From positions 1 through 64,000 of IMG/VR virus record IMGVR_UViG_3300020178_000002: DNA of 64,000 nt; one strand, given 5' to 3'. The position numbers and the translations under genes were made by a program. Shown in pieces: positions 10,246 to 28,828 of the stretch (its first letter is position 1; each line of letters opens with the position of its first letter). Under the pieces are notes generated by a model. The model had not been told where the DNA came from. It saw only the letters and a program-made list of their open reading frames with translations, and ran no database searches.

Positions 10246-11520
10246 ATGAGAAATCTAACAGCATCACAAAGAGTTGCCTCTTTGCATATTGCAAAAATGG
10301 AAAAAGAAGCTTTTCTTCTTGAAGCCATAAAAGAGAAGCTGCTATTAGGCACATTGACTACAGAAGCAAAAAGACAGAGTAAAGAAATGTCCTCTGAAGC
10401 TCGAAAAGGCATGAGGATGTTCTTTAATGACTCTGGTATAAACAGCCCTAAGAAGTTTACAGATTATATGGCAAGCGGTAAAGTTGACCTCAAAGACCCT
10501 TTTTCAAAGCTTCTTCATAGAGTGTGTAAGGGAAAATCTGTAGGTGAGGTTGGCGATATTGGTGGTAGGTTCTTCTCAGCTTACTATAAAAAAGACATCG
10601 AGGGGATGGCAGATGTTGTAGGAGTTGATGAAAAGGTGATGATGATCACTTGTATGCACTACATGAAAGACAGCCCCAAGATCAATTCTTTGGTTAAAAA
10701 AGGAGAGGACAGACTTAACAAGGCTTTATATGACAGAGTGCAAGAAACTTATCAGCTATATGTTGAAGAAAAGGCTCGGCAAAACCCAAACCAAAAACGT
10801 GGTAGTGATGCTATCTGGTCAAAGGAATTTGCTCAATTTTGCAAAGACCTTTGGCAGAATTCAGGAGATGCCTCTAAATTCGTAGATACTCTATTGACAT
10901 ATCTTAACGACAATATCATAAAAGATATGTTAGATGGCATTGTGGCTAAAGTGCCCATTGAGCATGAGATGTCTGCTGCCATCATGAAAGGCTTTTTCGG
11001 TGTTGTTGGATCTGTGGCTTCTTGGGTTGAGTGGGCTTTAGGTGGGGCTGTTTGGGCTTTGGGCTATGTTTTCACTATGCTTGTAGATGTTGAAAAGGGA
11101 GATGTCCTGCCCTATGTCTGGTCAACAGTTAGAGAAGTGTTACAAATAGGTTGGGTTATCCTTTCTCATGGGATAAAGCTTTGCTTTAATGTTCTCTCAA
11201 CGGGTCTTGTTTTAACAGCAGGGTTCTTAGGTCCTGCTTTTATTGTCAAGTTCCTCTTAGTAACTGTTGTTGCTTATCAAATATACCTATTTATGGCATG
11301 GGGTAACTATAAACTTACTGAATTACCAAAAGTTATATTCTGGGACTTCCCTAAAGCAATGCTCAAAAAGCTTTGGGATTTAGTCACAAATGGTGTCTAC
11401 AAGATGGACTCTAAAGCTAAGAAAGTTATAGTACAAGAAGTAGAGAAAGCAAAGAAGAAGTTGCCTGCACTTAAACCAGTACCTGCTGGAAGAGGCAGAA
11501 ATAGGTACTCAATGCCTTAA
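10246..11520 (+). CDS. leader-family protein with extensive hydrophobic C-terminal half
   Basis: MRNLTASQRVASLHIAKMEKEAF; GGAG SD before ATG 10246; several TM-like stretches. Confidence 0.8.
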   Translation: MRNLTASQRVASLHIAKMEKEAFLLEAIKEKLLLGTLTTEAKRQSKEMSSEARKGMRMFFNDSGINSPKKFTDYMASGKVDLKDPFSKLLHRVCKGKSVGEVGDIGGRFFSAYYKKDIEGMADVVGVDEKVMMITCMHYMKDSPKINSLVKKGEDRLNKALYDRVQETYQLYVEEKARQNPNQKRGSDAIWSKEFAQFCKDLWQNSGDASKFVDTLLTYLNDNIIKDMLDGIVAKVPIEHEMSAAIMKGFFGVVGSVASWVEWALGGAVWALGYVFTMLVDVEKGDVLPYVWSTVREVLQIGWVILSHGIKLCFNVLSTGLVLTAGFLGPAFIVKFLLVTVVAYQIYLFMAWGNYKLTELPKVIFWDFPKAMLKKLWDLVTNGVYKMDSKAKKVIVQEVEKAKKKLPALKPVPAGRGRNRYSMP

Positions 11521-12420
11521 TAACTCTCTCATTTGAAATAAGCCCTGTTCCTTATGCTTACACTCAAGCATTACATCTGCATCATTACTATACAGGTCAA
11601 AAGCCTCCCAATATGAATCAGAGTGTGCTTGGGGCTTAATTTTACTGTCCTTCTTTTCTTCACTTCTGCTCTGGGAGTAGTGAACAACAGGTTTAATAGA
11701 ACCCCAAGTAGATAATGCCATTTCTAAGGCTTCTCTTTCAGAGAGGTTTCCAGCACAAAACTTATGGTGGTGGTAGTCAAAGACTATAGGGGTCTTTGTT
11801 TTCTTGTAGATAAGGTTGTATAGGTCAAACACACTCCACATAGATGCTTTATCATCGTTTTCCAGAGTGAGTCTTGACTTCACTGATTCAGGCAATAACT
11901 TAAAGTTTTTGATCCACCTTTGAGCTGTAGCCTCCGCATCTCCATACATACCACCCACATGAATGTTTATTTTAGCGTATGTGGACATTTCAAGACCCAT
12001 AAGGTCAAAGACATCAGCATGAGTAGAAAGTTCTTTTATAGTTGATTCTACGACTTTCTCATTTGGTGAACCAAGCACATTAAAATGTCCTGGGTGTGTT
12101 GTTATCCTATGCCCTTTACTTTTTGCATAGTCTCCAGACTTTTTTAACAAAGAGCAGATTAGCTCATAATCAGGTAAGTCTTCTAAGTTATACTCACTCG
12201 ACCAAGGAAAAAGATTAGAAGATAGTCTAAAGAAGCGTATGTTCTCTTTTTCATTCCACTCTAAAATGGAAGATAAGTCTCTACAATTTTTCACGGCCAA
12301 CTCTGAAGCATAACTTATACCTTTTTGAGTAAATGTCCTTTTAATCATCGACCTGTTTGTAGTTACTCTTTCTTTCGACTCATTCAAAGTCTTGTTAATG
12401 CAAGCATATCCTAAATTCAT
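11509..12420 (-). CDS. uvsE: UV damage endonuclease
   Basis: LGYACIN, FFRLSS.LFPW, HPGHFNVLGSP, KINIHVGG, RLTLENDDK, PIVFDYHHH, VHYSQS, QAHSD, DVMLECK.KE. Confidence 0.95.
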   Translation of the reverse strand: MNLGYACINKTLNESKERVTTNRSMIKRTFTQKGISYASELAVKNCRDLSSILEWNEKENIRFFRLSSNLFPWSSEYNLEDLPDYELICSLLKKSGDYAKSKGHRITTHPGHFNVLGSPNEKVVESTIKELSTHADVFDLMGLEMSTYAKINIHVGGMYGDAEATAQRWIKNFKLLPESVKSRLTLENDDKASMWSVFDLYNLIYKKTKTPIVFDYHHHKFCAGNLSEREALEMALSTWGSIKPVVHYSQSRSEEKKDSKIKPQAHSDSYWEAFDLYSNDADVMLECKHKEQGLFQMRELLRH

Positions 12421-12476: not shown

Positions 12477-13862
12477 ATGGACAGTATGATTGATAGAGTC
12501 CTTAGAAAATATGCTAAAAAGTCATTAAACAGGAAAATAGATGATGCCTTTAAAACATGGAAAGGCAAGAGTTCTCTTAGTAATCAAGAAATTGGCTATT
12601 GGACACTTAAGTCTTGGAAGAACTTTTCGAAGAAAGATATTTCTAAAGACCCTTTGAAGAGAAAGAGGAAAGAATACGCAAAGAGAGTTTTTAAAAAATT
12701 CGAAGAAGCTATTTTGAAAGATGAGGGAAAAAAGCAAGAGTCTCAAGATGGTTCTTTGGAAGAGAGCCAAGTAGTAAAGCTTCTTAGTAAGGAAAACTAT
12801 GGATTACCTAAGAAGTTCTACAGTAAAAACAAATTGATGATCAAAGATGTTAACCCCTCTGAAGAAGATGTTAAGAAGTTAGCTTCTGAAATAGGAGAGC
12901 TTTTTAAGACACCAGGTCACCAGAAAGGTTTAATAGGGTCTTTCGTTAGAGGTCAAAAGTTTTTCTTAAAGCGAAATGCTAAAATGATGAGTCAGTTTTA
13001 CAAACAGACACATCAATTCTTTAAGAAAGAAAAGGATGAGAAGGATTTAAGCCTAGAATCTAAAATTAAGGAAAACTTAGAAAGTAACCCAGAGCTACAT
13101 AGGACTTCAAAGCTACTTGCTGCAAATTGGACTCAATCTACAATTATTCCAAAAGTAGGTTTGCTTTTAGGTGTTGGGGGCAAGTTAAGCATAGGCTCTG
13201 CTGTAGCAGCCTCTGTCTCGACAGCAGTAGGTGGCTCTGCTGCTGTGGCTACTATGCCTGCATGGATTCCTTTGCTGGCTGGAGTCGCAGTTTCTTCCAT
13301 TGTGATGGGTCAAGTGTTTAAAAAGACTGTCAAGCAATTAAATAAAATGGAAGGTGGTAAGAGAGGTTATGAGTCCCTTGCTGCTGACATCTATGCAGGT
13401 TATGCAACTCCAGAGAAAATAGAAAAAGAGTATAAGGCAAAGATGGAAGAGATACTAAACTCTAAAGGTGACCCTAAAGCAAAGAAAAAGAAGATTCTTA
13501 AACTCTATGAGAAGTTTGACAAAGATGTCAGACCCTCAATAGATAAAGGTCTATATCTTTTAGGTGAGTCAGAGGGTGCAGCTTCTGGAGATTACTTAAA
13601 AAGAGGTGCTGAAGATGATCTTCCTGTTTACTTGCAACTCAAACATCTTAAGCAATCTTATGAGTCTGAAGATATAATCTTGGAAACTTTAAAGAGTGAC
13701 TCAAAAGACATCTCAAAAGAAGCACAGAAACTACTTTCTGGAAAAGAAGAGCTTCCTAAAGATGTCATGGACAGTATAAAGGGTTTTGTTGACTCTGGTA
13801 AGAAAGCAAGCTCTCAGAAGGTGGCTCAACTATACCTTAACTCTCTTCAATCTCTCTTTTAG
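12477..13862 (+). CDS. Lys-rich protein with central Gly/Ala-rich hydrophobic hairpin
   Basis: GLLLGVGG...AVAASVSTAVGGSAAVATMPAWIPLLAGVAVSS; C-terminal KKASSQKVAQLYL. Confidence 0.8.
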   Translation: MDSMIDRVLRKYAKKSLNRKIDDAFKTWKGKSSLSNQEIGYWTLKSWKNFSKKDISKDPLKRKRKEYAKRVFKKFEEAILKDEGKKQESQDGSLEESQVVKLLSKENYGLPKKFYSKNKLMIKDVNPSEEDVKKLASEIGELFKTPGHQKGLIGSFVRGQKFFLKRNAKMMSQFYKQTHQFFKKEKDEKDLSLESKIKENLESNPELHRTSKLLAANWTQSTIIPKVGLLLGVGGKLSIGSAVAASVSTAVGGSAAVATMPAWIPLLAGVAVSSIVMGQVFKKTVKQLNKMEGGKRGYESLAADIYAGYATPEKIEKEYKAKMEEILNSKGDPKAKKKKILKLYEKFDKDVRPSIDKGLYLLGESEGAASGDYLKRGAEDDLPVYLQLKHLKQSYESEDIILETLKSDSKDISKEAQKLLSGKEELPKDVMDSIKGFVDSGKKASSQKVAQLYLNSLQSLF

Positions 13863-14481
13863 TTTTTCTGTAGTATCTGAAAGCATCTTTAAACTTTAAG
13901 AACTTCTTGCCCTTACTTACTTCGATTGTACTCTTATAATAGTCAGTCAAAGAAGTAATTACCAAGTAATATGCTTTCCCATTCTTCGATTCTAGTTTAA
14001 CTATTCTAAGTTCTTGATTGTTAGGTAATATGAAGTACTCACCCACAAGCATTTCTTTAGAGGTCTTTCCTAAAATCCTCTTTTGGACTTCTCTTAGCTC
14101 TTGGAAAGTGTGTTCTATTCTTTGAGGTCTGAGACTCGAAAGCTGTCTCTTTAACAAGATCATTATCCTCGGTAGCTTCCTTCTTACAGTTTGTATCCTG
14201 TTTTCTTTTCCAGAGTCATTGCCAACTTCTTCTAAGATAGTGCCTACTACAACTGTTCTCAGTAAAATAGTATTACTGAGAACAGCACCTGAAAGATTAG
14301 CACCTGTCAAATCGGCACTTGTCAAATCAGCATTAGAGAGATCTGCGTTCTCTAAGTTGGCATAAGAAAGATCCGCTCCTATGAGTCTTGAGCCTGAGAA
14401 GTTGGTGTTTTTCAGATCTTGTTCAGACAACTGTATTTCGTTCAAGATTCTTCCTGACAAGTTCATTCCAGAGTAGTTCAT
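13837..14481 (-). CDS. pentapeptide repeat protein
   Basis: ADLSYANLENADLSNADLTSADLTGANLSGA. Confidence 0.9.
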   Translation of the reverse strand: MNYSGMNLSGRILNEIQLSEQDLKNTNFSGSRLIGADLSYANLENADLSNADLTSADLTGANLSGAVLSNTILLRTVVVGTILEEVGNDSGKENRIQTVRRKLPRIMILLKRQLSSLRPQRIEHTFQELREVQKRILGKTSKEMLVGEYFILPNNQELRIVKLESKNGKAYYLVITSLTDYYKSTIEVSKGKKFLKFKDAFRYYRKTKREIEES

Positions 14482-15373: not shown

Positions 15374-15714
15374 TATCCTCTAACAATGACTTTTAAATGA
15401 GCCACACCTCTTTTAGAGCCATTTTGGATAACAAGGTCATCAACTTTCGTAGAGATCACTTCAAAGTCAGTGAGGTTTCTGGCTTTTAGTTTTGCTTGGA
15501 CTTGTTCAATCACCTCATCACCACAAATATGGACATTACTGCTGTTCTCCAAATCTTTGAGGTTGATATTAAAGGGTACAGAAAGTCGGAGAACCATATT
15601 GAACCCATCTACTTCGTAATTTGAATCTAAGAAGTCTGGGTCTTGAATTAGAGATGTCAGTCTCTTTAAGTTATTTCGGGGGGTGCTCATAAGTTTTTTG
15701 ATATATCTGATCAT
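15373..15714 (-). CDS. hypothetical protein
   Basis: 113-aa ORF with AAGGAG SD. Confidence 0.7.
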   Translation of the reverse strand: MIRYIKKLMSTPRNNLKRLTSLIQDPDFLDSNYEVDGFNMVLRLSVPFNINLKDLENSSNVHICGDEVIEQVQAKLKARNLTDFEVISTKVDDLVIQNGSKRGVAHLKVIVRG

Positions 15715-15866
15715 TTTAATCTCCTTTTAATTTTTAAAGTATTTTCCCTTTTTATATGATCAGAAACCTAACTTCATAACTTATTCTTACCTCTCGCTAG
15801 TCTTTTATACAGGATATAGAGCAGATCACATAGAAAGAGATCATTGCATACAGGCCAGGAGTTATC

Positions 15867-15882
15867 TAATAAGCTGTTTATA
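15867..15882 (+). promoter_or_regulatory. putative late-type promoter
   Basis: taata agctgt ttata. Confidence 0.6.
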
Positions 15883-15919
15883 ATCAGCCCTCTTTTGACA
15901 AAGACACAAGGAGGGTAAA

Positions 15920-16420
15920 ATGGCTGTAGCTTTTAAAAGAAACCAAATACTAGGCAGGGGAGACTTAGATATCTTCCTCACTAATTCAAATGGCAATGTC
16001 TCAAATGCTGCCGAGATTACTTATGCCCTTTACTTTGTAGAGCCTGGACCACCAGAAGCAGATGTTCTTATCGGTGATCCACAGCGTATTCCAGAGAACC
16101 CATCTGTTGGGGAATACTATGCTTCTGTTAGGATTCCTACAACAGCTACTTATGGTAGATACAGGATAAGGTGGACTCTTAAAGAGTTTGTTAATAGTAA
16201 CTCACAGACAGTAGTACAAGAGTTTGGTGTTGTTGCAGAAAATGCTGTTTTGGGTCTTCAGCTTACAGAAGCTCAGAAGTCTATGGTCTATAAGTTGCGT
16301 ATGCTTTTAAGAGATCAGTGTCTTGCTGGAGAAGAACTCGTCACTGTTGATGCTGACGGTGAAAAGATCACACTCCCTATCGAAGAACTATATGACATCA
16401 TAGGAGATGGAAATGCTTGA
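15920..16420 (+). CDS. N-half of a fractured putative head-tail adaptor: 133-aa N-extein + 33-aa IntN
   Basis: Ends ...LRMLLRDQ|CLAGEELVTVDADGEKITLPIEELYDIIGDGNA*: intein block A plus an IEEL motif. Confidence 0.85.
   Translation: MAVAFKRNQILGRGDLDIFLTNSNGNVSNAAEITYALYFVEPGPPEADVLIGDPQRIPENPSVGEYYASVRIPTTATYGRYRIRWTLKEFVNSNSQTVVQEFGVVAENAVLGLQLTEAQKSMVYKLRMLLRDQCLAGEELVTVDADGEKITLPIEELYDIIGDGNA
16319..16417 (+). other. short split-intein N-fragment (IntN, 33 aa)
   Basis: Cys1 at 16319; CLAG...PIEELYD; no block B in this fragment. Confidence 0.85.
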
Positions 16421-17282
16421 AGAACTGCTAGTTAAGTTTGACCTCACAATAGAGCAACTGAACAAAAAAGGTCGAGTAGCTAAAGAGATTGTAGAAAAGC
16501 GTTCTGCTCTTGTTTCACATCTCCATAAGCAAGGGTTCTCTTGGAAAGAGATGACCGAAATCACAGGTCTTTCCAACGGGTCTATTCAGAGGCTGACCAA
16601 AGCGAAAGGCTGTAAAGCTGTTCAAGACAAACGCAAGAAGTTAGGTGCTAACGCTGGTCGATCCACCAAAGGTATGGATAGGTCTGAGCAACTAAAAAAA
16701 CAATGGGCTAAAGGAGACTTTGATTTCCATCGGGGGAGAGTTCGACCACAACATGAGCGTGATAAACTTAAAAAGGCTTGGGAAGATCCCAAACTTAGAT
16801 TGTTAGCCTCCGAGAACGCTAAGAAGTATGTGTGGGGAAATTCAGATGTGAAACAGAAGCTCATGGACTTTCACCACGATCCCGAAGAAAGAGCAAGGAG
16901 ATCGAACGCTCAAGCGATTAGGATGAAAGAGAACCCGACACCTTACCTTAGAGGCAAAACCTCAATAGAGGCTACACCTAAAGGTACTAAAGATGAGGTT
17001 CGTGTTCGCTCAAGCTATGAAGCAAAGACAATCTCCATCTTAGAGTCCGACCCTAATGTCAAAAGCTATACCTATGAGCCAATATACAAAGTTGCTGGAA
17101 GAACAATACTCCCCGACTTTGTTGTCCACTATCAAGATGGATCTACTACTCTTGTTGAAGTTAAACCACAATGGGCTTTAAACCGAGAAGATGTTATCGC
17201 CAGGTTAGCCCTATCTCAAAAAGTTGCTGATGATAATGGTTGGTCTTACCAAACATGGACTGAAAAGGAGTTGGGACTATGA
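16413..17282 (+). mobile_element. free-standing putative homing endonuclease (HTH + basic repeats + TnsA-N-like PD-(D/E)XK)
   Basis: GFSWKEMTEITGLSNGSIQRL HTH; RSSYE...YTYEP...PDFVVHYQDG..LVEVKP; AGGAG SD inside the IntN coding region (alternative ATG 16407); stop overlaps the next ATG (ATGA). Confidence 0.8.
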
Positions 17283-17665
17283 CATCTCAAGAACAAGCAC
17301 AGAAGATTAAAGACGCTTTCAAAAAAAGGAAGCTATCAATCAAATCTATGGACACTCAAGGTGATTTCTCTTGGAAGCAAATCTCTAAAGCTCATAAGAA
17401 CCCGACACCTATTGAACCCATTTATAAAATCACCACAGAGCAAGGTAAACATCTCACTATCACAGGTGGACACCGAGTCTATATGTCTCCTAACCTTTGT
17501 GTTCCAGCAGAGGAGCTGTCCGTAGGACTTAGCTTACAGACATCACAAGGAGCAACTAAGATTTCCAATATCGAGGTCATCGAAAACAGACCCTTTATGT
17601 TCGACCTTACTGTTGAGGAGAACCATAACCTTGTACTCGAAGGTTCTGATGTGGTCGTTCATAAC
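17279..17665 (+). other. long split-intein C-fragment (IntC)
   Basis: Contains block B (TxxH), block F and terminal HN followed by Cys +1; lacks block A. Confidence 0.85.
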
Positions 17666-18670
17666 TGCCCAGACAAGTATTACCATTTTAGGCCACCAGA
17701 GCATGAGGCTAACATCGGTTCTTATAATCAAGTCTTTGGTCAAGTTTGGGAAGATGAAGAGTTTCTTGAGTACCTTGAGCGAGCACTCGACTGGTGGAAC
17801 ATGCAACCGCCAGAGACAGAGGATCTTCACACATTAGATCAGCTTGTTGCTCAGAAGCCTGCATGGAGAACACCTATTTTACAGGGTGCTATTCAGTTTG
17901 CAGCAATGGCATTACAGGCAAATTGGATTGTAGATGAATTCTCGGTTAGAGGAGATACTGACTTGGAGGTTTTACTTCCTAGTGGAGAAAAGGTCAAGCT
18001 CACTATTGAGGAGCTACATGAGATTATAAAAGAGGAGCGTATGATGGATAATTTGACCAAACAAGCAATCAAACAGGCTTTCTTACAAGGAGAGCTTAAG
18101 GTTCTTTCCGTTGATAATGAAACCAGCCAAGTAGGCTACCAAGTGATTTCTGATGTGATGAAGCACCATACTCCACATAAAAAGATACTAAAAGTAGAAC
18201 TCGATAATGGGCAGTTCGTTATTGCTACTCAAGACCATTCCCTCTTCACCATTGAAGAGGGCAAGATCAAATCCATTGAAACAGAAAACTTTTCTGTTGG
18301 AGACACCCTCGCTATCGTTGAGGGTGGTGAAGTTAAAGGGTGTATTATCACTAACATCTCTCAAGAGGAAGACTGTGAATACACTTATGATCTTTGTGTG
18401 CCTATAAACGAGAACTTCGTACTTGCTAATGGCATACTAGCACACAACTCATACTCTATTGGAGGTATTTCTCTCGACATAGACAGGTCTAGTAAGTACG
18501 AGGGTTTGAAATCCTCAGCAGAGCAGATGTGGTCTACTTCTGTAGAAGCCAAGGCTAGAACAACAAAGTTCATAAGGGGTTTGAGGCAACCGAAATATGG
18601 TGTGGGAATAAGATCGAGTTTTGGGCCTGCGGTGGGTCGTGGTGTATTGAGTCCGAGAAACTTTATTTGA
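17279..18670 (+). CDS. C-half of the fractured adaptor: IntC (129 aa) + extein (92) + cis intein (169) + extein (73)
   Basis: TITGGH...FDLTVEENHNLV...VVVHN|C and a second SVRG...ATQDH...YDLCV..NENFVLANGILAHN|S. Extein motifs W.DEEFLEYL..AL.WWN..PP.T and F|SYSIGG.SL.IDRS resemble phage neck/adaptor proteins. Confidence 0.85.
   Translation: MTSQEQAQKIKDAFKKRKLSIKSMDTQGDFSWKQISKAHKNPTPIEPIYKITTEQGKHLTITGGHRVYMSPNLCVPAEELSVGLSLQTSQGATKISNIEVIENRPFMFDLTVEENHNLVLEGSDVVVHNCPDKYYHFRPPEHEANIGSYNQVFGQVWEDEEFLEYLERALDWWNMQPPETEDLHTLDQLVAQKPAWRTPILQGAIQFAAMALQANWIVDEFSVRGDTDLEVLLPSGEKVKLTIEELHEIIKEERMMDNLTKQAIKQAFLQGELKVLSVDNETSQVGYQVISDVMKHHTPHKKILKVELDNGQFVIATQDHSLFTIEEGKIKSIETENFSVGDTLAIVEGGEVKGCIITNISQEEDCEYTYDLCVPINENFVLANGILAHNSYSIGGISLDIDRSSKYEGLKSSAEQMWSTSVEAKARTTKFIRGLRQPKYGVGIRSSFGPAVGRGVLSPRNFI
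17942..18448 (+). other. contiguous mini-intein (Ser1...HN/Ser+1)
   Basis: 169 aa with blocks A, B, F and G; no endonuclease domain. Confidence 0.9.
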
Positions 18671-18773
18671 ACCCTATGTAGGCAGAGGAGTATTGAGGTA
18701 AGCAACGAAAGTATGGTGTTGGTATCTGTACTTTGAGTGAGTACTTTGAACCCTATGTGGGCAGAGGGGTGAG
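18666..18773 (+). repeat. relic duplicates of the adaptor gene 3' end
   Basis: tttgaaccctatgtRggcagaggRgt occurs twice (18666, 18745) and reads FEPYVGRGV; aagtatggtgttggtatc (18709) reads KYGVGI. The gene itself ends KYGVGIRSSFGPAVGRGVLS. Confidence 0.75.
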
Positions 18774-18805
18774 AAAAAAATCTTGACCACTTGCTTGCTT
18801 TTCAT

Positions 18806-18844
18806 ATAAGTTAATCTCAACTCAAGAATAAAGGATTAACTTAT
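18806..18844 (+). promoter_or_regulatory. hairpin covering the SD edge and AUG of the endonuclease gene
   Basis: Perfect 11-bp pair ataagttaatc / gattaacttat. Confidence 0.7.
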
Positions 18845-20117
18845 GGCTACTTGCCCTCACTGTAAAAGAGATTTCAAAACAGCAATAATTAGTGGTAGAC
18901 ACCGCAAGGTGTGTTGGCCAGATTGGAAGCCCCAACCAATTACACCATGTATCTGTGGACATGAATCCACATCAAACACACAGATGAAAAGACATAAGAA
19001 AGAATGCGAGGTATGGCAAGGTCGAGATAAGAAAGCGATCTCAAAGTTCAGACGCAAACAAACGATGAAGAATCGTTATGGGGTTGAGAATCCAGCCCAT
19101 AGCAAAGAGTCTGTAGAGAAGCGTAAACAGACTAACCTCAAGCGTTATGGTGCAGAGAACCCTTTCTCAAAGGAGAGTAGCCTTTTTGAAAAGGTGCAAG
19201 ATGCTCTTGATGGTAAGCGACCAGTCTTAAAGGGTAAGGATAACCCTTTTGCTTGGGAGAGCGTACAGGATAAGATCAAGCAGACGAACCTTGAGAGATA
19301 TGGTGTGGTCAACCCTCAACAGAATGATGTGGTCAAGGCTAAGACAGAGGCTACTAATCTTGAGAGGTATGGTGGAACGCTATTGGGATCACCAGAGCTT
19401 AGGGCTAAGATTGAGGCAACGAATATAGAGCGTTATGGTGTGCCTATCCCTAGCATGAGTAAAGAAGTCATGGATAGGGTTGTAGCGACTAATATGGAGC
19501 GATATGGTGTACCTTATACGAGTGCAGTGGGGGAGTTTAGACAGAAGCAACTCAAGACGATGATTGAGAACTATGGAAGCCACTACTTTGCGTCTGAGCA
19601 AGGCAAGGGGGAGATTAGGGCTACGATGGTGGATCGTTATGGTGTTGAGTTTCCTGGTGCTATTGATGGTCATTGGGATAAGGTGCAAGAGACATTGAAA
19701 GATAGGTATGGTGTGGAGTTCCCTATCTTGCTTATGAATCAGAAAGAGATGAACAAGTTTGAGTCAAGGGTAGCCTCATATAGCGACTCGCTCACCTTTA
19801 CAGGTAATGGTGCATATTGGAGATTTCTTCCAAGCAAGAAGAACTTTGATGGCTCGATTGGTGGCTACAAGAATCCAGACTTTGTAGTTTGTGTGAGTGA
19901 TGATCCCGAACATCCTTACATGGGTGCCACAAAGGTAGTGGAGTGTTTTGGTCAGTATTGGCACTCACAAGCGTTAACAGGGATGAGTAAAGAGGAGCAT
20001 GAGCGTAATACGATAGAGGCTTATGCGGAGGTAGGGCTTGATTGCCTTGTGATTTGGGAGGGAGACATTCGTTCAGATGAGGGTTCAGTGATTGAGAAGG
20101 TGGAGAGGTTCTGCTAG
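18843..20117 (+). mobile_element. putative homing endonuclease: Zn fingers + TNLERYGV repeats + Vsr-like C-terminal nuclease
   Basis: CPHC..H...C and CICG..H...C; about nine T(N/M)xxRYG repeats; NPDFVV...VVECFGQYWH...GLDCLVIWE. Confidence 0.75.
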
Positions 20118-20240
20118 TCAGATGCTTGATGAGCTTCAGAGAGAAATAGATTCTCTAAAGAGAGACCTAAATAAAAAACCCCCCCCAGAATCCTATTGAT
20201 AAGAGGTGTATTACAATAACTATTATTAAAAGGATTTTAT

Positions 20241-21185
20241 ATGAACATTTCTAAAAATCATTTATCTGAGGCATTCCCCCTTGAAGGTCAAAACCCATTA
20301 AAATGTGAGCCATTGGCTTTTAGAGGAACTGTTGAGGATATTGACTTTGAAGAAAGTGACTTTGAAGGTATTACTGCGTTAAACACTTATTATAAAGGTG
20401 TGCATTTTAAAGGTTGTACTTTCAATCTTACTTCTTTTTTCAAGTTTGTGGACTGCACTTTCACTGATGTTTCTTTTAAATACATCAGTGAAGAACGCTA
20501 TAAGAAAGATAATGAAGAAGATAGGAGAAGTCTCTTTATCAACTGCAAGTTTGTAAACACAACTTTTAAAAAAGTAAGTCTGGCTGGTGTAAGATTTGAT
20601 AATTGCAGTTTAGAGAACATCGCAATCATATCTTCATGTTTTGAAGCAGTTGATTTTGAGACTTCAACCTTAAAGAATGTGAAGTTTGTAAGCTGTTTTG
20701 TTAAGAACCTCTTGGTTTCAAGTGGAGAAAAAGTTTCTTTTGTTGCCTGTAAGACTACTGCAAACAAACATAAGCCAGCCACAATTGAGTTTCTAAATAC
20801 ACGAAGCAATTCTAAACAGAAGATTGTTAGCCCTAAGTTAGAGCTGCTGGATGCAACAGATAACCAAAGCCATGTCTTTGCAGGGAAGGGTGCATATAAC
20901 CAATATGTTGCTTTTCAGCAACATAGGACATATTCTTATTTTTATGCAACTACCTTAAAAAGATTATATGAGAAAGCCAGATTAGCCGCCCCACAGGGGT
21001 TACATCTTCACGAAAAACTAAAACTTCTTGATGAGAAAGACGCAAGGGAAAAGAAAGCCTTTCGGAAGAAGCTGAGAAAAAATATTCTTGGGCTTATCCT
21101 TATTGGACTTAGTTCCTATCTTCTATATTCAAATCAAGAAGCTGTTCTTCAGTCTATTGAATACCTTAAAAACCTTAGCTTCTAA
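20241..21185 (+). CDS. pentapeptide repeat protein with C-terminal TM anchor
   Basis: HFKGCTF, CTFTDVSF, CKFVNTTF, VRFDNCSL repeats; ILGLILIGLSSYLLY. Confidence 0.8.
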   Translation: MNISKNHLSEAFPLEGQNPLKCEPLAFRGTVEDIDFEESDFEGITALNTYYKGVHFKGCTFNLTSFFKFVDCTFTDVSFKYISEERYKKDNEEDRRSLFINCKFVNTTFKKVSLAGVRFDNCSLENIAIISSCFEAVDFETSTLKNVKFVSCFVKNLLVSSGEKVSFVACKTTANKHKPATIEFLNTRSNSKQKIVSPKLELLDATDNQSHVFAGKGAYNQYVAFQQHRTYSYFYATTLKRLYEKARLAAPQGLHLHEKLKLLDEKDAREKKAFRKKLRKNILGLILIGLSSYLLYSNQEAVLQSIEYLKNLSF

Positions 21186-22677: not shown

Positions 22678-25215
22678 ATGATTTTTTATTCCGAGAAAGA
22701 TGTTGAGGTTCATTTTCGCAAGGTTTTAGAAGATGCAACAGGAGAACATTTTAAAACACTTCGTAAGGTAAAAAACTCAAAAGGAAGACATTGGGAAACA
22801 GATGGTGTAATAGAATGGCAAACACCTTCAAAAACACCTGTTAGAGTTCTTTTAGAAGCCAAATTTGGTGCTGACTTTAAGAAAGCAACTTCAAGAAGTT
22901 CGGTTTTAGCTCAAGCTTTGTTTTACTGTAAGCGTTTTGAGGAACAGGGAGATGACTTACCAAATGTAATATTTATTGGAGATGAGGAATACTGTTTCGC
23001 AGTTCCTATGTCTTCCCTTAAATCTTTTTTAGAAGCAGAGGTAGATTGGTCAAGAGCACCATCAAATCCAGATCCTTCTTTAGAAGTTAATGTAGATACT
23101 CATTTAGAAAGTACTCTTGGAGTAGATGGTGAGCATTTAAAGCAACTTTGTGAGGGATTGGCTAGTGCTTGTCTTCAAAAGGTAAAGCCTTCACCTCAAA
23201 ACATCTCTGCAATGTATCAATATTGGGTAGATCAAATATTCTTAGAGGGTCACTCATACACACCTGTTGAGATGACAGACATTTTTTTTGGTTGTGTGTT
23301 CTACTCAGAGATTGACGAACATTATGTTCAAGAACACAGGGTTAAAAAGAATACTATCATGATGAGTGGTAAAGAGTACAACATCAATGTTTCAGCTATG
23401 AGAGGTTTTTTCCAGCGTAGGGAAAGAGGTCTTTCTAAAAAAGATGTGGATGAACTTGTTTCCATGAGAGACCGAATTATAGAAGATGATACAAGACGCA
23501 GGCAAGGTGCTTTTTATACCCCTACTCTATGGGTAGCAGAAGCTCATAAAGAAATGGAGAAAGAGTTAGGGGAAGATTGGAGGGATGAATGTGTTGTCTG
23601 GGATTGTTGCTCTGGGACAGGGAATATTACTCGAGACTATGATTTTCAAAATCTAATTCTTTCCACAGCAGAGAAGCCAGATGTTGATGTTATTAAAAGA
23701 GAGTGTTACAACGAGGGTGCATTTGTATTCCAATATGACTTCTTGAATCCAGAAGATGAAAGTCCTTTCTTTACAGGTGACTCTGACAACGTATTACCTT
23801 TAAAGGTAAAAAAGATGTTAAAAAAGGCTGCTGAGGAAGATAAGAGGATAGTATTTTTAATAAACCCTCCTTATGCAGAGGATGGTGTTGCAGGGGCTAA
23901 AGGAAATACTCGTAAAGGGGTTGCAAGTAACACTCTTGTGAACAGTGAGATGCCAAAGTTAGGCAGAGCAAATAGACAATTATATGCCCAATTCCTATAC
24001 CAATGTGAAAAGGTAAGTAGAGATTATGGTTTTGACAAAAAGACCATAGGGATTTTCTGCCCTTCCATATTTATGTCCTCTGGGTCTTTTAGTAAGTTTA
24101 GAGAATGGTGGTATGCAAAGTATTCATACAAGTCAGGGTTTTTGTTTCAGGCATCACACTTTGCTGACGTTAAAGGGTCTTGGGGTATTTCCTTTACACT
24201 TTGGAGTGAAGGTAATACAGCATTAGAAAGCAATCTTCCTCTTTTATTAAAAGACACATGTCAAGCTGAGAAAGTTAGTGTTATTGGGGATAAGAATTTA
24301 TATTCACCCTCAGCATCTTCGGCATCTTCTTGGGTTTCAGCTCTTTCACCTGCTTCTTCTAATATAGACACACCAAAGTTTTCTAGTGGTCTTAAAGTTA
24401 AAGAATCTGTAAGCAATGACAAAGGTATTGATCAAGATGCTTTGGGGGTCATGTGCAATATGGGCAATAGTTTAATGAAGTCTGCTACAGATGTTTATTT
24501 TATATCTGGAAAGCCCTCTCATAAAGGATGCTGTAATTTCCCTTTGGTTGAAGGAGAAGGGTGGAGAAGGGCTATTTCCTTATTCTCAGCTAGAAAGCTT
24601 GTTTCATCTAATTGGGTTAACCAGAAAGATGAATACCTAATACCTGATGTAAGCAAAGAGGGTTATGAAGATTGGGTTGATGATTGCCATGTATATGCTC
24701 TTTTACACTCTTCTAATAACATAGTTTCAATGAGAAGCCTCGATTACAAATCTAAGAAGTGGGATATTTATAATCACTTCTTTTGGATGAGTAGAGCAGA
24801 GGCTATGGAGTTGTATGGAGAGAGCAAGGAAGCTAAGTCTCTTTATCGAGATGCTAGAAACAACCCAATCTCTTATAATAAGAGTTCTGGGCAAGTTAAA
24901 GAGTGGAGAAAAAATGGAGATCCTTACTTCTCATATATTCTCCCTAAGCTAACTCTTTCTTCACTCTCAAGAGAAATCTTGAGTGATCTTCAAAAGCTCT
25001 TTATTGAGACTATACCTTATAGGTCGCAGATAACACATGAAAAAGGCTTAGACTTACACTTAGGCTCATGGGATGCTGGCATCTACCAGCTTAATAAGAT
25101 TTGGAAGCAATTACCTATTTTGAATAAAAAGTGGGAAGCTTTGAAAGTAAAGCACAGACAACTTGGTAAAAACCTAGAGCATGGAGTATATACTTTTGGG
25201 TTTTTGAAGAAATGA
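22678..25215 (+). CDS. fused restriction endonuclease / amino-methyltransferase (Type IIG-like)
   Basis: N-terminal TDGV...VLLEAKF...AQALFY nuclease; GAFYTP; motif I VWDCCSGTGN; motif IV INPPY; LYAQF; C-terminal TRD-sized region. Confidence 0.85.
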   Translation: MIFYSEKDVEVHFRKVLEDATGEHFKTLRKVKNSKGRHWETDGVIEWQTPSKTPVRVLLEAKFGADFKKATSRSSVLAQALFYCKRFEEQGDDLPNVIFIGDEEYCFAVPMSSLKSFLEAEVDWSRAPSNPDPSLEVNVDTHLESTLGVDGEHLKQLCEGLASACLQKVKPSPQNISAMYQYWVDQIFLEGHSYTPVEMTDIFFGCVFYSEIDEHYVQEHRVKKNTIMMSGKEYNINVSAMRGFFQRRERGLSKKDVDELVSMRDRIIEDDTRRRQGAFYTPTLWVAEAHKEMEKELGEDWRDECVVWDCCSGTGNITRDYDFQNLILSTAEKPDVDVIKRECYNEGAFVFQYDFLNPEDESPFFTGDSDNVLPLKVKKMLKKAAEEDKRIVFLINPPYAEDGVAGAKGNTRKGVASNTLVNSEMPKLGRANRQLYAQFLYQCEKVSRDYGFDKKTIGIFCPSIFMSSGSFSKFREWWYAKYSYKSGFLFQASHFADVKGSWGISFTLWSEGNTALESNLPLLLKDTCQAEKVSVIGDKNLYSPSASSASSWVSALSPASSNIDTPKFSSGLKVKESVSNDKGIDQDALGVMCNMGNSLMKSATDVYFISGKPSHKGCCNFPLVEGEGWRRAISLFSARKLVSSNWVNQKDEYLIPDVSKEGYEDWVDDCHVYALLHSSNNIVSMRSLDYKSKKWDIYNHFFWMSRAEAMELYGESKEAKSLYRDARNNPISYNKSSGQVKEWRKNGDPYFSYILPKLTLSSLSREILSDLQKLFIETIPYRSQITHEKGLDLHLGSWDAGIYQLNKIWKQLPILNKKWEALKVKHRQLGKNLEHGVYTFGFLKK

Positions 25216-25925
25216 GTTTGGGTATGAAGCCTAGAGAAAAATATGAGGATTTATTTTTCCACAACGAAGACTTCCCTATCCTTGATCTAAATGTACATTT
25301 AGTGAAGTGTCATTTCTATGCTTCAAGGTTTAAGAAGACTTCTTTCAAAGGGTCTATTTTAGAGGACTGTACTTTTGACTACACTATCTTTAGTAGGTGT
25401 AACTTTGATGGGGCTGTACTTAAGGATAGTGATGTCTCTGTGTACACAAAGCAGGTCTATTTTAGAGGTTGTAGCTTTAAAGGTGCTACTATATCACTTC
25501 TGGTAGATGGGGATGCTGTTTTTGACAACTGCAACCTAGAAGGTGCGACTTTTAAAGATTGTGACTTTGCCTGTGCAAGTTTTCAAGGCAGCAACTGTAA
25601 AGGGGTAGACTTTACAGGCATTACATATAACTACCAAGAAGCTCAAGATCAGCATTTCAATGGATATAACCATGACCCTCGCTTATTGTTTCAAGGTGCT
25701 GATCTCTCTGGGGCTAAGTTTGATGGGTTTTCTTTAAACCATGCACAATTTGAGGGTGCTATTTTGGATGGTGCTAGCTTTAGAGGGTGTGACTTAAGTT
25801 CAGAGCTTGTAGATCTCACAGGTTGGGGCTGTTGTGACTTTTATTCTGAGGGGACTAGCTTTAAGGGTTGTGACATGAGTAAAGCAGACTTCACAGATGC
25901 TGATCTTACGGGTGTTTTGAAATAG
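25212..25925 (+). CDS. pentapeptide repeat protein
   Basis: TSFKGSILEDCTFD, ADLSGAKFDG, ADFTDADLTG; ATGA overlap with the R-M gene. Confidence 0.9.
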   Translation: MSLGMKPREKYEDLFFHNEDFPILDLNVHLVKCHFYASRFKKTSFKGSILEDCTFDYTIFSRCNFDGAVLKDSDVSVYTKQVYFRGCSFKGATISLLVDGDAVFDNCNLEGATFKDCDFACASFQGSNCKGVDFTGITYNYQEAQDQHFNGYNHDPRLLFQGADLSGAKFDGFSLNHAQFEGAILDGASFRGCDLSSELVDLTGWGCCDFYSEGTSFKGCDMSKADFTDADLTGVLK

Positions 25926-25983
25926 TTTTTTTATTTCTTCTATACTTCTATATTCGATAATAGATAGTAAAAAGGAGAAATAA

Positions 25984-26814
25984 ATGACTAAACTACCTAC
26001 AAAAATATCAGTTTATTGGGACTATCAAGACAGCCTATACGAAATTCTCGAAGAAGAAGAGATTGAGAATCTAACAGTAGAAGAGAAGCTGGAAGAGCTG
26101 GGTCTTGAAAGAGAAATCGAAATTCCAAGAAACATACTTCTAGAGATGGCTCTCACTCCAAAAGATGATAGAGAATTCCTTCTTTCGGATTATTTGTCAG
26201 ACACTTATGGCTACACCCATTTTGGCTGGGTTGTTATGGAAGAAAAAGCTCTGAAAGATATGGAATTTAGAAATGTCTATGTCGGAGACTTGGAAGACAG
26301 CTTCGCATCTTTAAACCTAGATGGGTTAAGGCTAAGTAAGTCTGAAATGCATGTTACTTTCAAAGATGTTCACTTTAAGGGTGCTGTTTTTACAGGGTCT
26401 GATATTAAGTCTTCCTCATTTATGAATTGTGGAATGGCTTCTGCTAACTTTACGGGGTGTGATCTTAGAGAAGTCTACTTTGCTTACTGTGACCTTAAAG
26501 ATGTAGACTTCACAGGTGCTGATGTAAAAGGTGCTATCTTTAAGAAATGTAAAAACTTGACCATAGAGCAACTTAGAAAAGTAAAGTCTGGGTTCATAGA
26601 TATTGAAATAGGAGATATTTTAAAATCGACAACCTCCACAGAACAATATGTAGTGATTGCTGTTAAAGGCGACAAGATTAAAATGAGAAACATAAGAACA
26701 GGTCGTAAATATATTAGGAAAGCTGTTTTTGATAACTCTGGGCATCAGGGCAAAGTTATGATTTCAGTGATAGATAATCGTAGAAACATCTACTATAACT
26801 TTAAGAGGAAGTAA
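25984..26814 (+). CDS. pentapeptide repeat protein with acidic N-domain and small C-terminal beta domain
   Basis: AVFTGSDIK, ANFTGCDLR, VDFTGADVK. Confidence 0.85.
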   Translation: MTKLPTKISVYWDYQDSLYEILEEEEIENLTVEEKLEELGLEREIEIPRNILLEMALTPKDDREFLLSDYLSDTYGYTHFGWVVMEEKALKDMEFRNVYVGDLEDSFASLNLDGLRLSKSEMHVTFKDVHFKGAVFTGSDIKSSSFMNCGMASANFTGCDLREVYFAYCDLKDVDFTGADVKGAIFKKCKNLTIEQLRKVKSGFIDIEIGDILKSTTSTEQYVVIAVKGDKIKMRNIRTGRKYIRKAVFDNSGHQGKVMISVIDNRRNIYYNFKRK

Positions 26815-26817
26815 GTT

Positions 26818-27558
26818 ATGAAGAATTTAAATAACCTTGAAGAAAGAGTATCAAACCTAGAGAAGAAGTCTGCTCGTAAGAGAAAGACTATCGGAGATAC
26901 AGTTAAGGACCTAGAGTTCCTAAGATCTGCACACCCAGATAATCTTAGTGCCTCTGAGCTAACTAGAATAGTTAAAGATAGAAGAATCTCTAAAGAGTTG
27001 AAAGCAGCGATTAGAAGTTATGTTAAAACTCAAGCTAAATATTTTGAGCTTCGTGATAAGAGACTAGATCTTTCTCGTTTAATTAAGGGTCTCTCTAGAA
27101 CAGAGAAAGAAACAGTAGCATTAGCCTATTCTGACAAAATGGATCTGATAGTAGAGAAACTTACCTCTGCTATTAAGCAGACTACTTTGACTTATAATGG
27201 GAAGAAGTTAAGTCCTGGTATCCATGTAGAAAAGACAGAGAATGGTCAAAATAATGGTGTGTTCGACAATAGAAAATTCAGAGTCAAGTTTATTTTTAAG
27301 CCTTATGACTTTGCACACTATATCTTTGCTGTCTATCCAAATAGGCATGTCAGGACAAAGGTATTGCCTAATGGCTTTGACCAAGACGATTTCTTTTCAA
27401 AGCTATCTGATGCCTTTGGGAAAAGTATTGAGAGACACCTGCCAGGTTTTACTTCGATAATAAGTAGTTATGACCTTGTAAACGCAAACTATCATGGCAA
27501 TGGTGTGTTAGATATTACAGTTGATGGATTAATCCATTACATAGAGAAGAAGAAATAA
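26818..27558 (+). CDS. leader-family protein
   Basis: MKNLNNLEERVSNLEKKSA. Confidence 0.75.
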   Translation: MKNLNNLEERVSNLEKKSARKRKTIGDTVKDLEFLRSAHPDNLSASELTRIVKDRRISKELKAAIRSYVKTQAKYFELRDKRLDLSRLIKGLSRTEKETVALAYSDKMDLIVEKLTSAIKQTTLTYNGKKLSPGIHVEKTENGQNNGVFDNRKFRVKFIFKPYDFAHYIFAVYPNRHVRTKVLPNGFDQDDFFSKLSDAFGKSIERHLPGFTSIISSYDLVNANYHGNGVLDITVDGLIHYIEKKK

Positions 27559-27559
27559 A

Positions 27560-28828
27560 ATGGCTAATCCAATACATGTAGAAAAAGCCTTAAGTGGTGA
27601 GAAGGATCTAAGAAACCTAGACCTGTCTGGTGCTAATTTAAAAGGAGCTGAACTTACAGGAGTTGACCTAAGAGGTTCTAACCTTAAAGGAACTAACCTT
27701 AAAAATGCTGAATTGGCAGGCTCTGATTTCAGAGGTTGCACCTTTGACAAAAATACTAAGCTAATTATGGCTCGGTTAAGCGATTCAGACTTTAGAGGTG
27801 TTAACTTCAATGGTTTAACTCTCTTTTATCTTGTCACAGTAAGGTCTGATTTTTCTGGTGCTAGTTTTGTGGGGTGTACAATAGATATTTTCAAATCAGA
27901 AAAAGCTAACTTTACAGGTGCAGACTTTACAGGTGCTACTCTGAAGGATACAGACTTTACAGAAGCTAATCTTTCAAAGGCTAAGTTTGTAAGAGCAAAT
28001 CTTAAACTCGCTAGCCTAGGAGGTGCTAACATAACAGATGCAGACTTCACTAAGGCTGATCTTAGTGGTGTATTTTTCAGGAAAGTTGATTTAAGTACAG
28101 CAGCTTCCTTTTCTGGTGCTACGTTTGTTAATGCTAAGATGCCTCATGCTAAACTCAAAGACATGGATCTTTCCAATGTAGATTTCACAGGTGTAGACCT
28201 CTTTGGTGCAGATTTGTCTGGTTCTATTCTCAGAGGTTGTTTGTTTGAGAGCACAGAAGCTAATCGGGCTCTCTTTCATGGGTCTATTTTAGAAGAAGCT
28301 ATCTTTTTATATAGTAAAATTAGCGGTTGTAGTTTTATGAATGCAAAAGTTAAAGGTGCTAGCTTCACAAAGTGTAATCTGAATAGATCAGGCTTTCATG
28401 GATCAGACTTAACTGGTGTCTCCTTTGATGGTGGAGATCTTATCTTTTGTGGGTTTGTTAATACTGAGATTAAAGGTGCAACTTTCAAGAATGTTGATTT
28501 AAGATACTCTGACTTCTACAAAGCAACAGGAGAAAAATCTGCTACCTTCTCAAAAGTGGAAGCACAGAAAATCAAAGCTGGTGATGTTCTTACTAGTCAA
28601 CACCCTAACATGAGAGACACTGAGTTGGATGTTATTAAAGTAACTCCAAAGATGCTTTTAGTAGCTCTCAATTTAGGGGATCTAGGCATTAAGACTTATA
28701 GGAAGAAGAGGAAATTGGGTCTTGTTCGAGTAGGTGATAACACTACTTACTACGCTGAGTATGTGGATTATAATAAATACAAAGTCACAAGTGTTAAAGC
28801 ATATGATACATGGAGCTTATTAAGTTAG
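27560..28828 (+). CDS. long pentapeptide repeat protein
   Basis: Over 300 aa of A(D/N)(L/F)xx repeats plus a C-terminal non-repeat domain. Confidence 0.92.
   Translation: MANPIHVEKALSGEKDLRNLDLSGANLKGAELTGVDLRGSNLKGTNLKNAELAGSDFRGCTFDKNTKLIMARLSDSDFRGVNFNGLTLFYLVTVRSDFSGASFVGCTIDIFKSEKANFTGADFTGATLKDTDFTEANLSKAKFVRANLKLASLGGANITDADFTKADLSGVFFRKVDLSTAASFSGATFVNAKMPHAKLKDMDLSNVDFTGVDLFGADLSGSILRGCLFESTEANRALFHGSILEEAIFLYSKISGCSFMNAKVKGASFTKCNLNRSGFHGSDLTGVSFDGGDLIFCGFVNTEIKGATFKNVDLRYSDFYKATGEKSATFSKVEAQKIKAGDVLTSQHPNMRDTELDVIKVTPKMLLVALNLGDLGIKTYRKKRKLGLVRVGDNTTYYAEYVDYNKYKVTSVKAYDTWSLLS

Follow-up and report, generated by a model that had tools for sequence, protein, structure and literature searches.

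How can one protein be made from a gene that is broken into separate pieces, with an endonuclease gene lying between them? This question is raised by positions 15,920 to 18,670 of a stretch of viral DNA of 64,000 nucleotides (nt), IMG/VR record IMGVR_UViG_3300020178_000002, positions 1 to 64,000, which is called here the window and is meant at its full length. ORF analysis of the window shows that three open reading frames (ORFs) span this interval on the plus strand. The first ends and the third begins with the putative halves of a split intein (intein 1), named IntN and IntC; the second is a free-standing endonuclease gene, and the third also contains a complete second intein (intein 2). Phage inteins are mostly known from replication enzymes and terminases; the host protein of these two is, as a best guess, a neck or head-tail connector protein. 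We argue that the locus is very probably a functional fractured gene which depends on protein trans-splicing, and we compare it with its relatives, in which the same two insertion sites are found in different states.

Results

A conserved gene interrupted at two sites

The gene that is broken in the window is found uninterrupted in related sequences. A search with the 92-residue middle extein (E2) returned 194 proteins, and 307 cluster representatives came from a full HMMER search started from an uninterrupted homologue; 269 proteins were fetched. The plain architecture, in which N-extein, middle extein and C-extein follow one another directly (E1-E2-E3), forms the largest class (127 of the 269 fetched proteins) and is typically 298 amino acids (aa) long. 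One of these proteins, P0004 (298 aa), reads LLRDQ-NPDKYYHF and WIVDEF-DYSIGG across the two junctions, and gp319 of Tunturi_5, a cultivated jumbo phage of Tunturiibacter, is also an uninterrupted and collinear homologue. Excising both inteins from the window pieces restores collinearity with P0004 and with the 126 other E1-E2-E3 proteins; at the +1 positions, Asn or Ser is changed to Cys at site 1 and Asp to Ser at site 2. The exteins have no frameshifts and no internal stops and are 70-83% identical to uninterrupted homologues. Identity over E2 reaches 93% to uninterrupted homologues and 100% to P0001 and P0002, two proteins that start with the IntC of intein 1 (IntC1).

This comparison confirms the predicted mature product of 133+92+73 = 298 aa, with junctions LLRDQ/CPDKY and VDEF/SYSIG (a slash marks a splice junction). 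A preliminary description of the locus, made from the window's letters, had proposed the same product and had suggested looking for its uninterrupted homologues; these exist, have the same length and are contiguous across both sites, which read LLRDQ followed by N or S and PDKY at the first and VDEF-DYSIGG at the second. Splicing would generate the junction peptides LLRDQCPDKYYHFR at the intein 1 site and NWIVDEFSYSIGG at the intein 2 site. Because the uninterrupted 298-aa homologues are the commonest form and the same split is found in independent assemblies, the three-piece pattern is not a product of chance.

The features of the locus are collected in Table 1. ORF1 ends in KLRMLLRDQ/CLAGEELVTVDADGEKITLPIEELYDIIGDGNA, followed by the stop. 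All three ORFs come with a Shine-Dalgarno sequence: GGAGG, at about 15905-15912, is the ribosome-binding site ahead of ORF1, GGAG lies 6 nt upstream of an ATG at 16413 in ORF2, and AAGGAG 8 nt upstream of the start of ORF3. The ATG at 16413 is the probable start of ORF2, and the gene callers of public collections use it, giving a protein of 289 aa. The overlap is 14 nt between ORF1 and ORF2 (8 nt if counted from this ATG) and 4 nt between ORF2 and ORF3 (ATGA), the latter linking the start of IntC to the stop of the endonuclease. No convincing terminator was found between the ORFs, and promoter-like sites were fewer than in shuffled sequence, in a scan that was uninformative. The G+C content is 0.43 over 16-20 kb, against about 0.37 on either side.

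Table 1. Coordinates of the fractured gene, its two inteins and the adjoining downstream elements in the window.
Feature	Position	Strand	Remarks
ORF1	15920-16420	+	166 aa = 133-aa N-extein + 33-aa IntN
N-extein E1 of the host protein	15920-16318	+	133 aa; 83% identity to P0004 residues 1-133
IntN of split intein 1	16319-16420	+	33 codons (Cys1 ... GDGNA; residues at 16319-16417) and TGA stop
Nucleophile Cys1 of intein 1	16319-16321	+	
ORF2, free-standing endonuclease gene	16407-17282	+	291 aa; helix-turn-helix (HTH) and TnsA-like PD-(D/E)xK
ORF3	17279-18670	+	463 aa: IntC + E2 + intein 2 + E3
IntC of split intein 1	17279-17665	+	129 aa; basic N-terminus, block B TGGH, block F, terminal HN
Middle extein E2	17666-17941	+	92 aa, CPDKYYHFRPP ... 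NWIVDEF; Cys+1 at 17666-17668
Intein 2, contiguous mini-intein	17942-18448	+	169 aa; Ser1, block B TQDH, terminal HN, Ser+1
Nucleophile Ser1 of intein 2	17942-17944	+	
C-extein E3	18449-18670	+	73 aa (SYSIGG...SPRNFI) and stop; from the ORF map and comparison with uninterrupted homologues
Decayed remains of the host gene's 3' end, in two partial copies	18671-18775	+	EPYVGRGVLR-stop and KQRKYGVGIC..EPYVGRGV; tblastn of P0004, translation
Second free-standing homing-endonuclease-like gene	18843-20117	+	DUF7487 repeats and C-terminal Vsr-like motif; PF24308, E 1.7e-49; phrog_3339 'homing endonuclease'

The two inteins and the endonuclease

Intein 1 is split between block A and block B, block B lying in IntC, and its halves are of very unequal length. 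The class-1 motif set is complete (TGGH, FDLTVEENHNLVL and VVVHN/C): block B reads ITGGHRVY, block F FMFDLTVEENHNLVL, and block G with the +1 residue VVVHN/C, while the C-terminal part of IntC runs from ITGGHRVY to FMFDLTVEENHNLVLEGSDVVVHN. IntN has a net charge of -8 and the first 45 residues of IntC one of +6; these opposite charges could drive the association of the halves. The preliminary description, which had recognised a 33-aa acidic IntN with Cys1 behind the extein and a 129-aa IntC with a basic N-terminus and blocks B, F, G and HN/C, agrees with this analysis on every point; so does its placing of a TnsA-like endonuclease between the two halves, since ORF map, Pfam searches and motifs locate all the elements.

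The comparison with relatives bears on this split. In the contiguous alleles P0006 and P0018 the first 30-33 residues are collinear with the IntN, and contiguous alleles (P0006, P0018, P0069 and others) differ from the split form only at the split point. Cys1 is kept in every IntN fragment of intein 1 seen among relatives, which measure 29-42 aa, and the terminal Asn and the +1 Cys or Ser are present in all censused alleles. The penultimate His is variable, with S, G, K or F taking its place in some alleles, as it varies in other inteins too. Among inteins of solved structure, the contiguous form of intein 1 best matches the CDC21-1 and TFIIB mini-inteins (6rpp, 5o9j) over residues 8-135, and the split point aligns just past the first beta-strands of these two structures; IntC1 taken by itself gives weak matches (KlbA 2jmz, E 1.5e-4; TFIIB, DnaB, gp41-1 and VidaL). 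Together with these phmmer matches, Pfam PF14890 and PF07591 point at the sequence level to a Hint fold, which IntN and IntC would form jointly.

Intein 2, inside ORF3, matches Pfam PF14890 (Intein_splicing, E 7e-23) and, over its full length, the CDC21-1 mini-intein 6rpp (E 7e-12). It runs from SVRGDTDLEV to NFVLANGILAHN, with the motifs TQDH, YDLCVPINENFVL and ILAHN/S. Its relatives are Ser1/Ser+1 inteins, of which more than 30 clusters are naturally split with an IntN of 29-51 aa, and Ser1 is kept in every such fragment seen. Ser1 inteins have been reported to carry a Lys/Arg-His 'NX' motif (PMC10189870); at the corresponding place, as far as sequence correspondence goes, intein 2 of the window has K-H-H (MKHHTPH).

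The product of ORF2 consists of an N-terminal HTH, a central basic region and a C-terminal TnsA-like PD-(D/E)xK nuclease. It matches Pfam PF08722 (Tn7_TnsA-like_N) with E 2.3e-8 and 34.9 bits, above the cut-off of 26.5; a comparison with PDB sequences found nothing. The motifs SSYE, PD and EVK are invariant across 23 homologues, down to 38% identity, and so are the catalytic residues E203, D235, E249 and K251. The family comprises 92 homologous clusters, and in every context examined it occupies this single genomic position, where its presence is polymorphic; a homologue lies between intein halves also in L001, L006, L008, L009 and L010. ORF2 is thus predicted to encode a homing-type endonuclease, which would cut alleles that lack it.

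Recurrence in relatives and in populations

The fractured arrangement, with all pieces on the same strand and tightly linked, recurs in L001, L003, L006, L008, L009 and L010. The first of these, LR745208.1 (an uncultured phage of 485 kb), was the sole match of a DNA-level search in the phage collection. It has the same three ORFs, namely an N-extein 55% identical to that of the window followed by a 33-residue Cys1 IntN, an endonuclease homologous to that of the window at 37% identity, and IntC with the C-extein, and is without intein 2. Three relatives of the endonuclease (39-51% identity) each lie between an ORF of about 162-165 aa, encoding N-extein and IntN, and one of about 258-298 aa, encoding IntC and C-extein. 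Across all lineages compared, Cys1, TGGH, the terminal Asn and the +1 Cys or Ser are retained. In LR745208.1 the ORF directly upstream of the fractured gene (L001:3886-5010, 374 aa) ends with a PD-(D/E)xK-like YLPDFWV and may be another endonuclease gene flanking the locus.

The samples that hold matching sequences are from salt marshes, estuaries and the sea. A single contig of an unrelated marine DNA data set contains positions 15700-18210 with 8 differences, and a contig from an RNA library spans IntN, endonuclease and IntC unbroken (16307-17661), which fits co-transcription. Intein 2 is missing from L001, P0002 and P0004 (VDEF-DYSIGG); an RNA-library contig of run X16 likewise has 32 nt (EF-DYSIGGISL) in place of 17937-18477, and this intein-2-free allele co-occurs in the same environment as the window allele.

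Identity of the host protein

A neck or head-tail connector protein is our best guess for the host, and we consider it a probable one. The assignment is drawn from several independent weak signals that agree. Eight of the 46 family members match, in part, phrog_17327 'head-tail connector' (best E 8.6e-6); hhalign aligns the family with PaBG gp291, annotated as a head-tail connector, at a probability of 95%; and tblastn ties the family to phage G gp165 and Tunturi_5 gp319, connector annotations being found on homologues in three jumbo phages, Tunturi_5 and PaBG included. An AlphaFold2 model of P0004, built from an alignment of 46 sequences (predicted local distance difference test, pLDDT, 80.6), predicts a beta-sandwich at the N-terminus (1-104), then a helical domain that contains a beta-hairpin (226-235), and a tail of little order at the C-terminus; the topology of helices, beta-hairpin, helix and flexible C-terminal tail also speaks for a connector. 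When the helical C-terminal domain was predicted again alone, neck and connector chains made up 5 of its top 30 fold matches (PhiTE, Sf14, R4C, phiCD508 and A-1(L)), the best being the PhiTE connector chain 9cc7_C with a non-significant E of 0.2 and a TM (template modelling) score of 0.35-0.41, and the others having E > 1. Low-scoring leads from a protein atlas are T4 gp13, the SU10 adaptor and gp6-like connectors.

That the host is not an adaptor, and is instead some other virion protein or a non-virion protein, is a serious alternative, to which we give somewhat less than even weight. The protein has no Pfam family, no enzyme domain in the Pfam searches and no PDB sequence match with either a single sequence or a profile of 46 sequences, and the window's own pieces matched nothing significant among the PHROGs. 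Foldseek with the full model retrieved from the PDB only immunoglobulin (Ig)-like beta-sandwich domains, which match the N-terminal domain, and from BFVD uncharacterised phage proteins and phage G gp165. In the window the gene does not lie inside a recognisable head module. The connector labels of Tunturi_5 and PaBG are annotations: papers on the Tunturi viruses, PaBG and phage G yielded no experimental basis for the label, and no statement was found in the literature that places the three homologues by proteomics or cryo-electron microscopy. The preliminary description had called the host a head-tail adaptor; this stays plausible in view of the phrog_17327 and PaBG matches, and its weak side is the lack of a Pfam family and of a significant fold match.

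A model of the locus and its alternatives

The observations can be brought together as follows. A conserved gene for a protein of about 298 aa, in a clade of large aquatic phages, has taken up two related class-1 mini-inteins, each at a site of its own. The first, intein 1, sits between LLRDQ and PDKY, where Asn or Ser became Cys, and an endonuclease cassette lies between its motif N1 (block A) and block B. Since this cassette gives the upstream piece its stop codon and the downstream piece an ATG with a ribosome-binding site, the intein is atypically split into a 33-aa IntN and a 129-aa IntC. A single transcript with coupled translation would give E1-IntN, the endonuclease and IntC-E2-intein2-E3. 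The acidic IntN would dock on the basic N-terminal part of IntC and complete the Hint fold; an N-S acyl shift at Cys1, transfer to Cys+1, cyclisation of the terminal Asn (Asn129) and an S-N shift would join E1 to E2, and intein 2 (Ser1/Ser+1, terminal Asn) would splice in cis and join E2 to E3 in the 298-aa protein. The endonuclease presumably cuts cassette-less alleles in co-infecting phages, and so would spread the cassette.

Several points weigh against this model. IntC1 alone matches solved inteins weakly (best E as given above), and both the Hint fold and splicing are deduced from sequence comparison. The role of the host as a neck protein is a best guess, read from annotations and weak matches. 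The window covers 64 kb of the much larger genome of a marine phage, which may carry an intact copy of the gene elsewhere, and the RNA-library contigs may stem from contaminating DNA.

Among other explanations of the split itself, it is conceivable, and in our judgement improbable, that the fragments assemble non-covalently through the intein halves and function without splicing. A precedent comes from Aeromonas phage Aeh1, where a homing endonuclease has split NrdA and the pieces are held together, unspliced, by domains derived from the mobile element (PMC3045599). The spliced product of the window is a prediction from sequence, and the penultimate His varies, as noted above. Against this stands the retention of Cys1, T-x-x-H, the terminal Asn and the +1 Cys or Ser across lineages at 39-55% identity, which would not be expected if binding alone mattered; moreover, near-identical contiguous alleles must splice in cis to release the protein.

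Even less probable is that the locus is a decaying gene copy disabled by mobile elements. Selfish elements do abound in the region (two inteins, a pair of endonuclease genes and the decayed duplicates of the 3' end), but all exteins are intact and close to their uninterrupted homologues, the split arrangement persists over deep divergence, and tblastn with P0004 found no second copy of the host gene in the window.

Finally, it is extremely unlikely that the stops arose in assembly, or that recoding bypasses them to give one long intein with a nested endonuclease domain. ORF1 and ORF3 do share a reading frame and the ORFs overlap tightly, but the same stops occur in independent assemblies from different studies, and every ORF has its own Shine-Dalgarno sequence. 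In relatives the gaps between the ORFs measure 31-36 nt and the overlaps 4-91 nt, in varied frame combinations; with spacing and frames differing, there is no conserved frameshift geometry, which speaks for separate ORFs, and we reject programmed frameshifting or read-through.

Split, contiguous and remnant states of the two sites

At both sites the relatives show four states: the site may be empty, may hold a contiguous mini-intein, or may hold a split intein whose halves are separated either by an endonuclease gene or by what remains of one. Locus L013 is an example of an intein-free allele. Intein 1 is contiguous in P0006, P0018, P0069, P0127 and P0150, and split in 22 IntC-E2-E3 proteins and 5 E1-IntN fragments. 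Intein 2 is contiguous in the window, in P0077, P0123 and others, and is split at the equivalent position in the clusters mentioned above, always with Ser1. Both inteins are split, making a three-piece gene, in P0001, L003 and L008; P0001 has an E2 identical to that of the window and a nearly identical IntC1. The three-piece form is found in close as well as distant relatives: in L003:452-2864 and L008:2476-6247 the TnsA-like gene splits intein 1 and a DUF559/Vsr-like gene splits intein 2, and in L012:2501-5369 intein 1 is contiguous and intein 2 alone is split. The gene within intein 2 of L003, L008 and L012 encodes a DUF559/Vsr-like endonuclease (EVDGCYWH) of the family described by Dassa et al. 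(PMC2677866).

Three footprints are relevant to the direction of change. The contiguous intein 1 of L012 reads IGGDNAC-KIKQAF and keeps AATGCTTG, which in the window comprises the tail of IntN with its stop and the beginning of the endonuclease gene. In L004 the halves of intein 2 are 80 bp apart (L004:6235-6335), and the spacer consists of the first ~50 and the last ~30 nt of a Vsr-like endonuclease gene; because it is made of both ends of that gene, it is a deletion remnant. In the window, a join within intein 2 (AAAGAG/GAGCGTATGATGGAT, KEERMMDN; 18028-18050; the slash here marks the join) matches the 3' end of the L003 cassette (AAAGGAGCGTATAATGGAT; compare L003:1195-1225 and 2150-2175) and retains, exactly at the split point of the relatives, the downstream half's ATG and ribosome-binding site. 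The join in the window and the remnant in L004 have the look of stages in a process by which the endonuclease is lost and the halves then re-fuse.

In a maximum-likelihood tree of the IntC1 region, with 30 split and 5 contiguous alleles in a sample shaped by the length filters of the homologue searches, the contiguous alleles are scattered among the split ones, and well-supported branches force at least 4 changes of state. The simplest reading is that the endonuclease gene was lost repeatedly, with the halves re-fusing in frame, and the direction from split to contiguous is suggested by the footprints and the nesting. We are evenly divided on the broader proposal that intein splitting is reversible and recurrent in this family, that the TnsA-like and Vsr-like families, which are unrelated to each other, use a second, non-canonical Hint site between motif N1 and block B, and that split inteins re-fuse into working mini-inteins when the endonuclease is deleted, the start of a homing endonuclease gene (HEG) in L012, the 80-bp HEG remnant in L004, and the Shine-Dalgarno sequence and ATG in intein 2 of the window being the footprints cited for it. 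If this is true, the number of trans-splicing steps needed for maturation of the neck protein would differ between strains (none, one or two), and dozens of natural matched pairs of inteins, one splicing in cis and the other in trans, would be available, including atypically split Ser1/Ser+1 ones.

Surroundings of the locus

The decayed copies that follow the host gene correspond to its last ~25 codons and lie between the host stop and the downstream endonuclease gene; they may be recombination leftovers from the insertion of an endonuclease. The downstream endonuclease gene is a polymorphic insertion directly behind the host gene, since a contig of run X15 joins 18664 to 20181. In alleles without it (L003, P0002, P0003 and P0012) the host protein carries a hydrophobic C-terminal tail of 23 residues (VFPLFIGSYEMLSGFLSVAQGVI), which is missing from the host protein of the window.

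Two more genes of the homing-endonuclease-like kind lie in other parts of the window, at 204-1424 and 11509-12420 (minus strand); they encode a GIY-YIG protein and an endonuclease of phrog_8420, and the genome is heavily colonised by homing-endonuclease-like elements. Paralogous proteins encoded at 13837-14481 (minus strand), 20241-21185 and 25212-28828 share PHROGs with no function assigned (phrog_923, 12514, 15350 and 7713), the second of them carrying pentapeptide repeats. A full-length methionyl-tRNA synthetase gene, of a kind typical of very large phage genomes, lies at 28900-30426 (Pfam tRNA-synt_1g, E 7e-109).

Discussion

By its defining sequence features the element of the window belongs with known split inteins and fractured genes, a kind already described. 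A terminase gene fractured after motif N1, with an IntC of 122 aa, was described in 2009 by Dassa, London, Stoddard, Schueler-Furman and Pietrokovski (PMC2677866). The window locus resembles this terminase, 'fractured at an unusual point', in its split after motif N1 and its long IntC, and the fractured genes of that study in a cassette which carries translation signals and in intein halves of opposite charge. It differs from them in its host, a probable structural protein rather than an enzyme of DNA metabolism or a terminase; in the endonuclease of intein 1, which is TnsA-like and not Vsr-like, the Vsr-like one being found in intein 2 of relatives; and in having two inteins in one small gene, with empty, contiguous, split and remnant states all sampled. 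Two typical but non-defining traits of fractured genes are thus absent here: a host in DNA synthesis or repair, and a Vsr-like endonuclease in intein 1.

Other atypically split inteins are AceL-TerL (25/104 aa), GOS-TerL (37/115 aa), VidaL and PolB16 OarG (15/168 aa, Ser1/Ser+1). Intein 1 shares with them a short, synthesizable IntN and a long IntC, a split between blocks A and B, and a phage or metagenomic origin, and with AceL-TerL also Cys1/Cys+1; it differs in its host gene and in the lengths of its halves, and is known from sequence. The TerL inteins are set beside it here by description, not by sequence, and no close sequence relationship to it was detected for VidaL (6vgv; E 0.42). The rarity that the preliminary description had claimed for short-IntN splits was overstated, in view of the terminase case of 2009, VidaL and PolB16 OarG, and such splits are common in related phages.

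The CDC21-1 and TFIIB mini-inteins (6rpp, 5o9j), the best solved-structure matches to intein 2 and to contiguous intein 1, are themselves contiguous, archaeal, and found in cellular replication and transcription genes. Where inteins of this type have nested endonucleases, these occupy the canonical site after block B, according to a published account (PMC6801210), whereas the endonuclease genes of the window family occupy a site before block B. With TnsA of Tn7 (PF08722), ORF2 shares the PD-(D/E)xK core, with E...PD...ExK conserved; the match is confined to the N-terminal nuclease domain, and unlike TnsA, ORF2 has neither a Tn7 context nor TnsB-E partners, carries an N-terminal HTH and a central basic region, and would act as a homing-type free-standing gene. 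What sets the window locus apart is therefore its host gene, its TnsA-like endonuclease, the presence of two inteins in a small gene and a complete natural series of states.

The current understanding of how such elements work is left unchanged, and there is no mechanistic surprise; the locus is of use to biochemists who work on inteins and to students of the dynamics of selfish elements in large phages. For protein engineering, natural split inteins with a short IntN are scarce and wanted for semisynthesis; the window supplies a 33-aa Cys1 IntN with a 129-aa IntC, and its relatives at least 30 Ser1/Ser+1 clusters with an IntN of 29-51 aa and with close contiguous counterparts. For the evolution of inteins, a single gene family has members at every stage for both sites (empty, mini-intein, split, remnant and re-fused), so that their order becomes testable. 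For phage biology, many strains of large aquatic phages would depend on trans-splicing to make a conserved, probably structural protein, and such a structural host widens the list of phage genes in which inteins reside.

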